A DNA stretch of 64,000 nt from Salpingoeca rosetta (GCA_033442325.1 JAWQFM010000019.1:730315-794314), one strand, 5' to 3'; counted from the stretch's first letter, positions 11,963 through 19,964 are shown. Made by a program: numbers and translations. Notes: generated from the sequence alone by a model not told the origin.

Positions 11963-14900
11963 ATGCTGCGCATGGAGCGTGCGTCGAGCCGTGCCGGTGT
12001 GATGAAGCGCATCAAGCTCAGCATCGTCTTTGTCAACGCAGACGGCATCCTCATCGTATCCGGTGAGATGCGCGTCGCCACCGCTCAGCCTGTTTTGCGC
12101 CTTGCTTGCCTCTGATCCTTTTTCACATCGTGCACGCAATTCGCCCCGCTGCTGTTTGTTGACTTGCTTCCACGCCGCCGGCACGAGCTCACCATCGACC
12201 ACATCTGCCCTGCCTCGTTGTTGCCAGTGCGGGAGGCTCGATTGCAGGGCAGTGTGGAAGATGACGCAGCACCTCGTCTCGGACCTCCAACCTCATACGC
12301 AAACGTCTTCCTCGACCCAGGTGTGTGTGTGTGTGTTTGTGTGTGTGTGTGTGTTTGTGTGTGTGTGTGTGTGTGTGTGGTGTGTGTGGTACAAGCGCTT
12401 CTATTTGACGTTGCTTACCACTCACTATCAATACTTGCTTCCGCTGTCCAGACCCATCGAGCGATGGCGAGAACCAGCGAAAGACGCAGCTCATCACCAA
12501 GACACATTCTCCAGCATGGAACCAGACGTTCAAGTTGTGAGTTGCGTGTGTGGGCTGTATATGCGCTGTAGCGGTTTGAGAGTGCGTCCTTGCTTCCCTC
12601 TTGCCACGCTGTTCCCTTCCTCACTGTCCCATCACCATCACCGTCACCATCAACACGACCACTGCTGCCATCAGCTTCATCCCGCTGGACATGCCCCATG
12701 GCACCCGGCTTCACCTCGCCGTCTGGACCAGGTAAACATTGTGTGTGTGTATGTGTGTGTGCGTGCGTGTGTGCGTGCGTGTGTGCGTGTGCATGTGTGC
12801 GTGCGTGCGTGTGTGTGTGTGTGTGTCTGGATGTGTGCGCGTGCGTGTGTGTGTGCGTGTGTGTGTGTGTGTGTGTGTGTGTGTGTGTGTGTGTGTTGTT
12901 GCAGTGGCCGTCGTGTGTGCGGATGCTTCAACGGTTGCTTTGACACCACCACCATCACCATCACCACCACCATCACCATCACAACCACCACCGTCCACTG
13001 CAGGAGCAACAGCGGTGATCACTACAGCGGCGGGCTCTCCTTTGCTCTGGAGGACGTGATGCAATGTCAGTTTCTGCGCCCATTCACTGAACACACGCTG
13101 CGAGGTGTTGTGTGGTGTTGCATGGTTATCTTCACTGCTCATGGTTTCATTCGCCAAACCAGGCCTCTTGTTCCCTCACACGCACACGCGCACACATCCC
13201 CGCTCCCTCCCAAACACCATCACCATCACCATATGTGTACAGCACCGCGTGCCGGCTGGTATTCGCTGCTCCCCCGTGAAGAGGCCATCCTCGGTCACAC
13301 GAAGGTGCGCACTCGCCTGAACACACGTGTGTGTGTGTGTGTGTGTGTGTGTGTGTGTGTGTGTGTGTGTGTGTGTGTGTGTGTGTGTGTTCATCAATGC
13401 CTGTGAAGTTGTGTGCGTGATGTTAGGTTTTCGGCACGTATGCTGTGGTTTCCATTCCACGACATCAACTTCGGGTTCTGTCATCATCATCATCATCATC
13501 ATCATCATCATCATCATCATCATCATCATCATCACCATCATCATCATCATCATCATCATCACATCATCATCATCATCATCATCATCATCATCATCATCAT
13601 CATCATCATCATCATCATCATCATCATCATCATCATCATCACCACCACTGTTACCATCATCACCACTGTTTCCAACGCCACCAACTCCAGCTGCGAATGC
13701 ACAGCGAAGTTGCCGCCTCACGACACTGTAAGCAGCGTGTGCGTGTGTATGTGTGTGTGCGTGTGTGTGTGCGTGTGTGTGTATGTGTGTGTGTGGATGG
13801 AAGCTGACGAAGTCACGTTGTGTTACATTATCGTCGACATTCACACATATTCGGCTTTGTTGACCACACGCTCACGCCACACGCAACAACACAAAACAAC
13901 ACAACTGGCACTCCATACACGTTCTCGCGTCGACAGCGTCAACGACCCTGTCCACGGCGAGCAATGCCAGCTGGCGACCAGGGCAGGCATGCAGGTCCGG
14001 CACTCATGCACCAACGACATGTGTTGTTGAGACAAGCGGTGTATTTGCGTGAAGGGGCTGTGCTGTTGCGCGCGCGTGAGGGTGTAGTGATGCGGCAGTG
14101 TGGTGCACCTGCTCATCACCAAACAAGTAACGCGCTTGCAACCTCCACTGTCGGTGTGACCACCACCACCACCACCACCTATCGTAACATCAACATCACA
14201 ACGACGACACCACCACCACCATCACCACCACCATCACCGCCACCACCATGTCCAGGGTGCTGACGGAGGATGACGCGTCCGTGTATGAGGTGGCGACTAT
14301 TGAACAGATTCATCGCGAGCGCGGTGTTGCCATTGTCACTGAGCGCGGACACAACGCAACAAACCGCAGGGTAACGTTTCGTGTGTATGTGTGTGTGTGT
14401 GTGTCTGTGTGTGTCTGTGTGTCTGTGTGCGTCAACGAACCTCCTTGTGCTGCAGTGCCTGTGTCGGATGGGAACACATTCACATCCATGCCTTTAACTC
14501 GTTTGTATTGTCCATATTTCACAGGAGGTTCGCCTGTCTGAGATTGTGCCCCTCGACGCCAGCGTGAGTCGCCTCAACACACACACACACACAGATACAC
14601 CCCGTCTAACTCATCCGCTTGGTCCGTGTGTACGTGTATGTGCTCTCCTCATCTCCTCATCTCCTCATCTCCTCATCTGTTCATCTGTTCATCTGTTCAT
14701 CTGTTCATCTGTTCATCTGTTCATCTGTTCATCTGTTCATCTCTACAGCCGCCGCGCCGGTCGTCGCTTCGACGCATGAGCATCAGCGACAGCAGCGAGG
14801 GCGGTGATGCTGCTGCGCACACACGCATGCGGCTCTCGGGCACGCTGGGTGACGACGTGGATGTGGATGCGATGATGAGTCACGATGACGACGACGACGA

Positions 14901-17900: not shown

Positions 17901-19964
17901 TGAAACGATTGCTTTCAGCAGCCTATCAACACATGTCATGCCATGTCCCACCCACCGATGTGCCAATGCAGCTGCTTTCGTCATTCGCCTGCCCATACAT
18001 ACCCACGTTCACACGTTCACGTGCATACACACACCACAACAGCGGCAGGCGCAGGGCAAGTGGGTGAAGCTGCTGTCGAGAGAGCACGCCCCTCCACGTA
18101 CCCGCGCCAGATCCTCATCGTCCAACCCGGCCCACCTGCCCAACGGGTGCGCCGTTGATCCAGCCACGCTCACGCTGCGGGATGTTGTGCTCCCTTGCAA
18201 CGCAGACCTCGGCTTCAGCCTCCGCCTCAACACGCCCGGCGTCATTGGGTGAGCGTAATAGACCTGTGTGTGTGTGTGTGTGTGTGTGTGTGTGTGTGTG
18301 TGTGATGACAATACATCGATGGACTCTGAGAGTGGTTCGCAGACACTGCTTGGGTGTTGTTTGGTTGACGCTGTGCGCCACACTGCCCACGCGGCTCTCG
18401 TCTTTCCGCTACGCAGTCAACAACACTCCCCGCATCACATCAAGGCCTGTCATCATTCTCACGCTCGCGGCACGTGCAACCGCATCAATCCCTCACCACC
18501 ACCACCATCACCACCAACACCACCTCCTCACTGCACTTCACTGCCCCCTCATGTCACCATCTTCAGCGAGGTGCGACCTGAATCCCCCGCTCACACCGCG
18601 GGTCTTCAGGACACAGACGCGATTGTTCGCATCAACCACATCCCCGTCGCAGGCCTCTCCCATGAGGTGTGTGTGTGTGTGTGTGTGTGTGTGTGTGTGT
18701 GTGTGTGTGTGTGTGTGTGTGTGTGTGTGTGTGTGTGTGTGTGTGTGTGTGTGTGTGTGTGTAGTGTTGTGCGAGTCACGCATGTGTGTGTGTGTGTGTG
18801 TGTGTCGTTTTGTGCACGTCAAGCACGTGTGTGCGACTCCCGCGTCCGTGATATCCAAACTCTCTCCTTCAAAGCATCTGCTGATGCTCTCACGACTCCA
18901 ACAACGCTTTACTCCGGACGCAGGGTATTCTGGAGCTGCTGCGTGCGGTGCAGGGGAAGCGAGTGCACTTGACCGTTCAGCAGTACCTGAAGCGCGTGAC
19001 GGTCTTGAAGGACGCGAACCGCGGGTTTGGTTTCGTGCTGCAGGGGAACATGCCCACATATGTTAAGAGGTGCGATCGTATTGAGCAAGGGCTCGTGTGT
19101 GGTGGTGAGAGTTGCAACAATCGCATTGTTTGCCTGCAATAGCTTATTGTTCACCCTCGCGCACACATGCATCCACACACACACACTCACTCACTCACTC
19201 ACTCAGTCGCTCTCTCACTCGCTCACTCACCCTCTCACTCCTTCTCTCGCTCACAAACACACAACCCCCCCCCCCGCCCCAATAACACGACCGCCAGCAT
19301 CGACCCTGCTGGCGCTGCGGAGCGGGCGGGACTGCGGCTCGGCGATCACATATGGGAGATCAACGGCGCACACGTGCGCGATAAACCCCACGATCACGTC
19401 GTCAGCATTCTTCGCAGCTGTGCGCAGGGGGTGAAGCTGCTCGTTCGCCCAACACTGCGGCGCGTGGACGTGCGTGGCACTCCCGGCGTGAGCGATGGTT
19501 TCCCAGGGTTCACGCTCCTGCAGAAGGGGGCGTCACCCCTCCACGTGTCGAGTGTTGATGAGGACGGACCAGCCGCGCTGGCAGGCCTCGAGCTTGGCGA
19601 CCAGGTGTGGGAGATCAACGGACAAAACGTCCGCACACAGTCGCTGGCAGCTGCGCGAGCGCTCATTGCGTCAGAAGCGCAGAAGGGGCGTGACGAGGGG
19701 GCGTGTCTTCGCCTGGTGGTCATCTCCACCTTGCGACGCGTGACCCTCAATGACACTCCGTTGGGCCTCAACGTTTCTGGAGAGCACCCGTCGCGCGTGG
19801 AGCGCGTTGATGCTGGTGGACAGGCCGACACGGCTGGCTTGCGTGCTGGCGACATCATCTGGGGCATCAATGGACGCAGTGCGCTCTCGCTCACACACGC
19901 GCACGTGATTGAGGCGATTCGTTCTCGTCCGCAGCGCGTCACCCTCATGGTGCCGCTCCAATAG
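11963..19964 (+). CDS. Multidomain signalling scaffold: C2 - SMN-like Tudor - DH (RhoGEF) - PH - 4x PDZ
   Basis: C2 exons 11963-13303 (RIKLSIVF...IVSVREAR...[33 protein letters not shown]...RLHLAVW...[18 protein letters not shown]). Tudor ~13965-14560 ([51 protein letters not shown]). DH ~14980-16620 ([45 protein letters not shown]). PH ~16700-18080 ([21 protein letters not shown]). Four PDZ ~18170-19964 (LGFSL, GFGFVL, PGFTL, LGLNV, each with AGL..(G)D...IN). Stop TAG at 19964. Confidence 0.85.
13481..13645. repeat. Intronic (CAT)n microsatellite
   Basis: Direct reading; lies between the last C2 exon and the exon at 13691. Confidence 0.95.
14674..14740. repeat. Intronic (TCATCTGT)n octamer repeat just upstream of an acceptor
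   Basis: About 8 copies, preceded by (CTCCTCAT)n. Confidence 0.95.
15083..15260. repeat. Intronic (GTT)n microsatellite
   Basis: Direct reading. A similar (GTT)n lies at ~59563-59680. Confidence 0.95.

Follow-up and report, generated by a model that had tools for sequence, protein, structure and literature searches.

PTSG_07410 of Salpingoeca rosetta encodes a choanoflagellate C2-Tudor-DH-PH-PDZ protein with a candidate non-catalytic DH domain

Here, we describe PTSG_07410, a gene of the choanoflagellate Salpingoeca rosetta whose complete coding region lies at positions 11963 to 19964 on the + strand of a 64,000-nucleotide stretch of DNA (GCA_033442325.1, JAWQFM010000019.1:730315-794314; referred to as the window). 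The gene (XP_004990910.1, EGD77070.1, UniProt F2UIM1) is already in the public annotation but unnamed, its sole description being "hypothetical protein." It encodes a cytoplasmic protein of 998 residues that contains, in this order, a C2 domain (residues ∼14-150), a Tudor domain of the SMN type (178-233), an acidic linker, a DH-PH tandem (∼310-640) and four PDZ domains (680-995). PTSG_07410 and its relatives are Dbl-family multidomain proteins and, as such, of a known kind; their domain combination is one that we did not find elsewhere. This architecture is real, conserved in craspedid choanoflagellates and undescribed in the literature that we searched. Throughout the family, the DH domain has replaced residues with which canonical DH domains contact their GTPases, making it a candidate for a domain that binds without classical exchange catalysis.

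The coding sequence starts with the ATG at 11963, ends with the stop codon at 19962-19964, and is divided into 23 exons by 22 GT-AG introns of 112 to 386 nucleotides (nt), with the reading frame unbroken across all 22 (Table 1). The exon model was built by hand from GT-AG sites, frame continuity and similarity to known domains, and was corrected with RNA contigs and the public protein. Its spliced translation matches the public protein residue for residue over all 998 residues. An earlier interpretation of the window made without database searches (referred to as the sequence-only reading) had proposed about 20 exons spliced into a single gene for a C2 domain, an SMN-type Tudor domain, DH-PH and four PDZ domains. 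The splicing of many small exons holds, while the actual count is 23; the single gene and its domain order are borne out by the exact match to the 998-residue protein, by Pfam and by the Tudor searches; and all peptide motifs quoted in that reading are present at the positions given for them. The window has a G+C content of ∼55%, and (TG)n, (ATC)n and (GTT)n microsatellites are interspersed with short, coding-looking blocks on the + strand.

Several lines of evidence support that the two halves of the protein derive from one transcript. First, we compared public S. rosetta RNA data with positions 13651-15082, where a single gene and a pair of genes would give different transcripts; runs carrying ∼0.3 of the window's words behave as RNA assemblies. 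Three contigs from three runs and two studies, X5 (3374 nt), X4 (2043 nt) and X7 (1581 nt), are spliced without gaps from exon 6 through the start of exon 12, joining 13304 in succession to 13691-13727, 13937-13994, 14256-14370, 14525-14563, 14749-15066 and 15434. In these contigs, the end of exon 6 appears as a 30-nt loose end matching 13274-13303, the first bases of exon 12 (15434) are likewise a loose end, and the GAC/GAT repeat of exon 11 (14876-14951) is unaligned and of equal length in the RNA records. Second, every one of the 22 raw stranded reads from X14, which belongs to a third study, maps to exons, and the first mate is always on the − strand, indicating an mRNA from the + strand, as common stranded protocols give. 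Third, X5 contains 751 nt before 13689 and 2050 nt after 15070, compared with the 459 nt and ∼1970 nt of coding sequence that the model calls for on the respective sides. Thus, X5 is about as long as the complete mRNA would be, including a 5′ untranslated region (5′UTR) of ∼290 nt; it carries ∼294 nt 5′ of the ATG. Altogether, PTSG_07410 gives rise to a single + strand mRNA of ∼3.4 kb, and the end of C2, the Tudor domain and the start of DH are on a single transcript. That the remaining exons are part of this transcript we infer from splicing that keeps the frame, the 3374-nt length of X5, the identity to the annotated protein and the colinear orthologs. The check for a single transcript that the sequence-only reading had called for succeeds on contigs of three runs from exon 6 through the start of exon 12.

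These data bear directly on the possibility that two neighboring genes, one for C2-Tudor and one for DH-PH-PDZ, were wrongly merged by annotation or read-through. In-frame Met codons in exon 11, 5′ of the DH domain, could begin a shorter protein; however, in the contigs of three runs the last Tudor exon (14563) runs straight into exon 11 (14749) and exon 7 follows on exon 6, and the frame is preserved through 22 of 22 introns. Moreover, both halves are contained in a transcriptome open reading frame (ORF) of Salpingoeca urceolata and in a genomic ORF closely resembling the protein of Craspedida sp. UC1. The latter lies on a metagenome scaffold (L002:603-3983) as one uninterrupted ORF of 1126 codons and is independent proof that all domains share one polypeptide. 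We consider two genes extremely improbable, and for the main isoform this reading is already refuted: it was rejected, together with that of an annotation chimera, on the spliced contigs, the exact protein identity and the one-ORF ortholog.

The spliced protein gave positive results for C2, Tudor, DH-PH and all four PDZ domains in HMMER/Pfam searches and, for C2 and Tudor, in AlphaFold models, analyses that had been suggested as a check. When Pfam was applied to single exons, it detected PDZ only, the small exons being too short for detection of C2, Tudor and DH. On the whole protein, Pfam places the C2 domain at residues 30-141 (42.9 bits; cutoff 22). In a sequence search of the Protein Data Bank (PDB), the best match to this domain is PKC-alpha (7e-14), while RGS3 reaches only 4e-4, and RIM, synaptotagmin-like and PI3K-C2 domains follow far behind the conventional PKC C2. 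In an AlphaFold model of residues 1-245, the predicted local distance difference test score (pLDDT) is ∼80-92 across most of the C2 domain, and the target-normalized template modeling (TM) score is 0.84 to the C2 domain of PKC-alpha (4dnl) and 0.83 to that of RGS3. The C2 domain is, therefore, of the conventional-PKC/RGS3 structural type, as originally proposed. The calcium ligands of the PKC-alpha C2 domain, D187, D193, D246, D248 and D254, are incompletely preserved: in the HMMER alignment at most two of the five Asp residues are kept (D187 as D46 and D254 as D117), and D193, D246 and D248 align with Thr, Val/Thr and Thr/Ser, respectively. PTSG_07410 accordingly lacks the full set of five acidic ligands of a conventional PKC C2 domain, and this incomplete set suggests that membrane binding by its C2 domain is probably calcium independent.

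The Tudor domain is less conspicuous to Pfam, which scores SMN_Tudor at residues 178-218 below its cutoff of 22.7 (13.5 bits in the whole protein and 18.2 bits in the excised segment). Sequence and structure searches agree on its identity. With residues 160-240 as a query against the PDB, the top 14 matches are all Tudor domains of SMN, SPF30 or TDRD3 (best, 1.8e-4), and a profile of the S. rosetta, Craspedida sp. UC1 and Monosiga brevicollis sequences matches SPF30/SMN at 6e-14 and TDRD3 at 3e-11. The AlphaFold model of residues 168-240 has five strands and a mean pLDDT of 70.5; its top Foldseek matches are SMN, TDRD3 and SPF30, with target-normalized TM scores of 0.68-0.82 among the best 15 and root mean square deviations of mostly 2.1-2.4 Å. 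In the UC1 ortholog, SMN_Tudor exceeds the Pfam cutoff at 31.4 bits. Residues 178-233 are, thus, confirmed as a Tudor domain of the SMN/SPF30/TDRD3 type. To our knowledge, no described family has an SMN-type Tudor domain fused to DH-PH. At the positions of the aromatic cage of SMN (W102, Y109, Y127 and Y130), S. rosetta has T188, Y195, E214 and H217 and so lacks the four aromatic residues; all four are aromatic in UC1 (F/Y/F/Y) and in M. brevicollis (Y/Y/F/Y). The intact cage in the latter two species suggests that the domain probably was a methyl-arginine reader in the ancestor of the family and that the pocket was lost in S. rosetta, in which the domain is now probably a plain protein-binding or structural module. 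Between Tudor and DH, the GAC/GAT repeat of exon 11 codes for a poly-Asp tract (residues ∼283-303), and the corresponding linkers of the orthologs have a different length and sequence.

The DH-PH tandem has the two features by which Dbl-family proteins are recognized: a DH domain recognizable by sequence and a PH domain directly C-terminal to it. Pfam matches RhoGEF at residues 336-496 (53.4 bits; cutoff 27.6), beginning at profile position 15 and skipping the start of conserved region 1 (CR1), and weakly matches SOS1_NGEF_PH at 554-638 (E value 0.003). The closest solved structures are the DH-PH tandems of intersectin-1 and -2, followed by ARHGEF16, NET1, p115-RhoGEF and P-Rex. Intersectin-1 is matched at 1.4e-13 with the single sequence and at 4.5e-32 with a six-species family profile, in which profile positions 8-335 align to residues 3-340 of the intersectin-1 chain and, thus, cover DH and the whole PH domain.

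Within this well-recognized fold, the residues expected at the GTPase interface are missing. In work on Tiam1-Rac1, Dbs-Cdc42 and ITSN-Cdc42, contacts with the switch regions are made by the Glu of CR1, by Lys/Arg and Gln of CR3 and by the Asn of the last long helix (alpha9), and exchange is abolished when these residues are mutated. We found no open literature that states the catalytic DH residues; a review describes CR1 and CR3 as forming the GTPase-binding surface of the DH domain (PMC8305018). As canonical DH domains for comparison with six family members, we took those of ITSN1, a fungal ITSN-like protein, ARHGEF38 and ephexin-1. All four canonical domains keep [T/S]-E in CR1, P-x-Q-R-[IV]-x-[RK]-[YL] in CR3 and [IV]-N-E in alpha9. 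By contrast, each of the six family members has other residues in place of the Glu of CR1, the CR3 motif and the Asn of alpha9; the S. rosetta domain has T-L, P-I-R-T-M-N-L-L and V-H-E at the respective sites. Just after CR1, the family has an invariant motif of its own, E-P-L..D.T..F, indicating that the DH domain is under constraint. The sequence-only reading had assumed a working RhoGEF, an assumption that fits poorly with a DH domain lacking the hallmark GTPase-contact residues. There is a precedent: the DH domain of obscurin, which deviates at conserved GTPase-contact residues and has no exchange activity in vitro, was proposed as the first "pseudo-GEF," i.e., a pseudo-guanine nucleotide exchange factor (PMC10118190).

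The family-wide absence of these hallmark CR1, CR3 and alpha9 residues makes the DH domain a candidate non-catalytic one and the family a candidate pseudo-GEF scaffold. We put it at about even odds that the domain would serve to bind or position a GTPase or some other partner and would not catalyze exchange in the classical way, and we think this likelier than a standard GEF. The latter would be an ordinary active Dbl RhoGEF, probably directed at Cdc42 like intersectin, in which the auxiliary domains were reshuffled and the changes in DH are mere divergence. Such an enzyme would account for a Pfam RhoGEF match above the cutoff, for a family profile that spans the entire intersectin-1 DH-PH at 4.5e-32 and for the conservation of the DH domain in six species, and reshuffling around similar DH domains is a general trend in Dbl evolution (PMC5499878). 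It would not be expected to have replaced, in six of six orthologs, three hallmark positions kept in four of four canonical DH domains, nor to match the Pfam profile only from position 15 onward. We, therefore, regard an active enzyme as a serious possibility, although the less probable of the two.

The PDZ domains appear conventional. Pfam finds them in four stretches (155.6 bits), their carboxylate-binding loops are of the normal GLGF type (L-G-F, F-G-F, P-G-F and L-G-L at residues 688, 768, 852 and 938, respectively), and three of the four have a His at the first position of helix alpha-B, the mark of class I PDZ domains.

To delineate the family, one exhaustive HMMER search was performed with the last exon, which encodes half of PDZ2 through PDZ4. 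It identified six representatives with a colinear, C-terminal match: Craspedida sp. UC1 (1126/1127 residues), S. urceolata (993 residues, a complete transcriptome ORF), Barroeca monosierra (968 residues, a cluster member of a 236-residue representative), M. brevicollis (A9V109, 875 residues), Salpingoeca infusionum (837 residues) and an unnamed fragment of 572 residues. Thus, five other craspedid choanoflagellates have colinear orthologs, in which Pfam finds C2, RhoGEF and PDZ. Between S. rosetta and B. monosierra, the proteins are 51% identical from DH to the end and 59% identical over C2. Among 161 proteins, including the 150 best PDZ matches, local hidden Markov models of the family's C2, Tudor, DH and PH domains match family members only. 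The proteins of S. urceolata and S. infusionum have no Tudor domain, and only a short remnant aligns in the B. monosierra model, possibly owing to an error of prediction. In M. brevicollis, the model is without half of C2 and the first Tudor strand, jumping from mid-C2 to the second Tudor strand, which is probably an annotation gap. In both of these models, gene callers probably overlooked small exons. The family also occurs on marine metagenome scaffolds. On a Tara Oceans scaffold (L001), the last exon is 61% identical to that of S. rosetta, and on that scaffold tblastn with PTSG_07410 finds no part of the gene besides the last exon. The intron density of the same gene differs strikingly, with 22 introns in the coding region in S. 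rosetta and none across the UC1-like ORF of the other scaffold.

The taxonomic reach of the family is, as far as our searches extend, restricted to craspedid choanoflagellates and marine metagenome scaffolds. The gene had been proposed to be either ancestral or lineage specific; the second proposal agrees with colinear relatives that are all craspedid or from marine metagenomes, while for the first no member was found outside choanoflagellates. Searches with a protein word index were nearly blind (the last exon retrieved one relative, B. monosierra retrieved S. rosetta only, and a six-sequence alignment missed its own members), and we draw no conclusions about absence from them. Among the Atlas clusters near residues 160-530, in a library of clusters with at least 50 members, none combines Tudor and RhoGEF.

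Table 1. Coding exons of PTSG_07410 and a candidate upstream intron in the window (aa, amino acid residues of the protein)
Feature	Position	Strand	Content	Support
Candidate 5′UTR intron	11793..11961	+	GTAAGC...CGCAG, ends one base 5′ of the ATG	Sequence only
Exon 1	11963..12062	+	ATG and start of C2, aa 1-34	Spliced translation identical to public protein
Exon 2	12228..12320	+	C2, aa 34-65	Aligns with PKC-alpha C2
Exon 3	12452..12536	+	C2, aa 65-93	Spliced translation; PKC-alpha C2 comparison
Exon 4	12675..12731	+	C2, aa 93-112	Spliced translation
Exon 5	13004..13065	+	C2, aa 112-133; GTCAGT donor	Spliced translation
Exon 6	13243..13304	+	End of C2, aa 133-153	Spliced translation; 3′-terminal 30 nt are the loose end before 13689 in X4, X5 and X7
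Exon 7	13691..13727	+	37-nt linker exon, aa 154-166	Present in contigs X4, X5 and X7
Exon 8	13937..13994	+	First Tudor strand, aa 166-185, W178	RNA contigs; raw reads; Tudor searches
Exon 9	14256..14370	+	Tudor core, aa 185-223	RNA contigs; Tudor searches; structure match
Exon 10	14525..14563	+	Last Tudor strand, aa 224-236	RNA contigs; direct join to exon 11
Exon 11	14749..15066	+	Ser-rich/poly-Asp acidic linker (aa 237-∼305) and first DH helix with CR1 (to aa 342)	RNA junctions 14563 to 14749 and 15066 to 15434; ITSN1 alignment
Exon 12	15434..15553	+	DH, aa 343-382; family-invariant E-P-L..D.T..F	Loose end at 15070 in four of four runs; spliced translation
Exon 13	15785..15879	+	DH, aa 383-414	Spliced translation
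Exon 14	16080..16217	+	DH including start of CR3, aa 414-460	Spliced translation; ITSN1 alignment
Exon 15	16496..16730	+	Remainder of CR3, last DH helix, DH-PH linker, aa 460-538	Spliced translation; DH alignments
Exon 16	17063..17134	+	PH, aa 539-562	Spliced translation; family profile
Exon 17	17389..17441	+	PH, aa 563-580	Spliced translation
Exon 18	17591..17654	+	PH, aa 580-601	Spliced translation
Exon 19	17779..17853	+	PH, aa 602-626	Spliced translation
Exon 20	18043..18248	+	PH C-terminal helix, linker, first half of PDZ1, aa 627-695	Spliced translation
Exon 21	18567..18666	+	PDZ1, aa 695-728	Pfam PDZ on the single exon, E value 2e-4
Exon 22	18924..19069	+	End of PDZ1 and start of PDZ2, aa 729-777	Pfam; spliced translation
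Exon 23	19298..19964	+	Remainder of PDZ2, PDZ3, PDZ4, stop, aa 777-998	Pfam PDZ, 114.5 bits, three stretches; 61% identity to Tara scaffold L001

The gene structure offers some room for variant splicing. Exon 18 has an alternative in-frame donor at 17666/17667, 12 nt 3′ of the annotated one, use of which would insert V-R-S-L, and exon 20 has three in-frame CAG acceptors spaced 6 nt apart (18041-18054) with possible exon starts at 18043, 18049 and 18055. Pure microsatellites lie in intron 6, (ATC)n of ∼160 nt at 13483-13640, and in intron 11, (GTT)n of 141 nt at about 15083-15223. (TG)n runs of 62-94 nt are found in introns 6 (13328-13389), 15 (16776-16841) and 21 (18668-18761), and several of them start at, or within ∼25 nt of, the donor GT (13328 and 18668).

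We considered whether PTSG_07410 is a pre-animal member of the PsGEF/RGS3 lineage. In a language-model feature search, mollusc and arthropod clusters with C2, PDZ and RhoGEF rank first (0.92; 188 of 256 features shared) and RGS3 clusters with C2 and PDZ come next (0.83), and the C2 domain of RGS3 is structurally as near as that of PKC. However, the ranking mostly reflects shared domain content, from which alone such similarity is expected, and serves as a lead only. By sequence, the C2 domain is far nearer to conventional PKC than to RGS3, and the DH-PH is nearest to intersectin. PsGEF (Drosophila CG14045), moreover, is reported to be protostome specific and has the order C2-PDZ-RhoGEF, with a single PDZ domain drawn in the published scheme and no Tudor domain reported (PMC2684095). 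Kinship with PsGEF and RGS3, which had been suggested for this gene from its sequence, thus finds no support in the sequences or in the domain order, and we consider it unlikely.

Altogether, these findings support, with a probability of ∼0.7, an overall explanation in which PTSG_07410 is a single gene of a choanoflagellate family that encodes a membrane-proximal scaffold with a candidate non-catalytic DH domain. We suggest that the C2 domain, probably independently of calcium, and the PH domain would hold the protein at the membrane, where the four PDZ domains may gather the C-terminal tails of membrane and signaling proteins. DH-PH would link these components to a GTPase of the Rho family or to a different partner, more likely by binding than by classical catalysis. 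The Tudor domain, a putative methyl-arginine reader in ancestral form, would act in S. rosetta as a plain protein-binding or structural module. A more specific version, in which the family is a conserved choanoflagellate-specific pseudo-GEF that combines an intersectin-like DH-PH without exchange activity as a binding platform with a methyl-arginine-reading Tudor domain (as in UC1 and M. brevicollis), a calcium-independent C2 domain and four PDZ domains, is a possibility that we hold to be somewhat less likely than not.

Several considerations weigh against this explanation. For every member of the family, the mechanism is a prediction. The weight that we give to the missing DH residues depends on structural and mutational work on Dbs, Tiam1 and ITSN, and the canonical DH domains compared number only four. 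A substitution at a single position is tolerated by some Dbl proteins, and the good conservation of the DH domain in the family would fit any conserved function, even an unusual form of catalysis. The RNA comparison covered 13651-15082, and the part of the transcript from PH to PDZ lies beyond it. Finally, absence of the family outside choanoflagellates rests on the one exhaustive search with the PDZ tail and on the poorly performing word-index searches.

Dbl RhoGEFs are a main route by which surface signals are coupled to the actin cortex, and the Dbl repertoire of choanoflagellates is used for reconstructing the toolkit of the animal ancestor. PTSG_07410 adds to this picture that choanoflagellates built multi-PDZ signaling scaffolds of their own, besides sharing those of animals. 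A Tudor domain adjoining DH-PH with a four-PDZ tail is a combination that we did not find among the retrieved relatives or the nearest Atlas clusters. What stands out most is that the contact residues of canonical DH domains appear to have been lost throughout a family that also carries a Tudor domain. If the DH domain is non-catalytic, the family would represent a rare, evolutionarily conserved pseudo-GEF, an idea so far raised only for obscurin. If the pseudo-GEF reading is true, arginine methylation and receptor tails would be linked to the positioning of Rho GTPases at the cortex in the closest living relatives of animals. If, instead, the DH domain is active, PTSG_07410 would be an uncharacterized lineage-specific RhoGEF, mainly of use for annotation. 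S. rosetta is amenable to transfection and gene editing and, therefore, the pseudo-GEF hypothesis is directly testable. Fort & Blangy reported 13 Dbl proteins in S. rosetta that cluster with vertebrate subfamilies, and the main text of their paper does not describe this architecture (PMC5499878). Searches with gene and protein identifiers found no papers naming PTSG_07410; PDZ1 of the M. brevicollis ortholog is mentioned in passing in a survey of PDZ domains.

PTSG_07410 shares parts with several known systems and differs from each of them. Compared with PsGEF as described in the literature, it has the domain types C2, PDZ and RhoGEF in common but arranges them in the order C2-Tudor-DH-PH-PDZx4. 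With the long RGS3 isoforms (C2-PDZ-RGS), it shares the domain types C2 and PDZ, its C2 sequence being nearer to PKC. In conventional PKC (alpha/beta/gamma), the C2 domain has the same motifs, L-x-P-D-P...K-T and G-x-L-S-F...G-W-Y-x-L-L; however, PTSG_07410 is devoid of kinase and C1 domains and retains no more than two of the five calcium-binding Asp residues. Its Tudor domain has the same fold and belongs to the same sequence family as those of the methyl-arginine readers SMN, SPF30 and TDRD3, whereas the cage is degenerate in S. rosetta. The long forms of intersectin-1 and -2 (EH-EH-coil-SH3x5-DH-PH-C2) have the closest DH-PH and also combine it with a C2 domain. In PTSG_07410, by contrast, the C2 domain is N-terminal and of the conventional-PKC type, a Tudor domain and four C-terminal PDZ domains are added, and Pfam finds no EH or SH3 domains in the protein or its orthologs. 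ITSN1, moreover, keeps the CR1 Glu, the QR..RY of CR3 and the alpha9 Asn, all of which are replaced in the choanoflagellate family. In this respect, the family is reminiscent of obscurin, which likewise holds a DH-PH within a large scaffold and deviates at conserved GTPase-contact residues, except that obscurin is an animal muscle protein of the unrelated Trio-type subfamily and that the inactivity of the choanoflagellate DH domain is a prediction from sequence.

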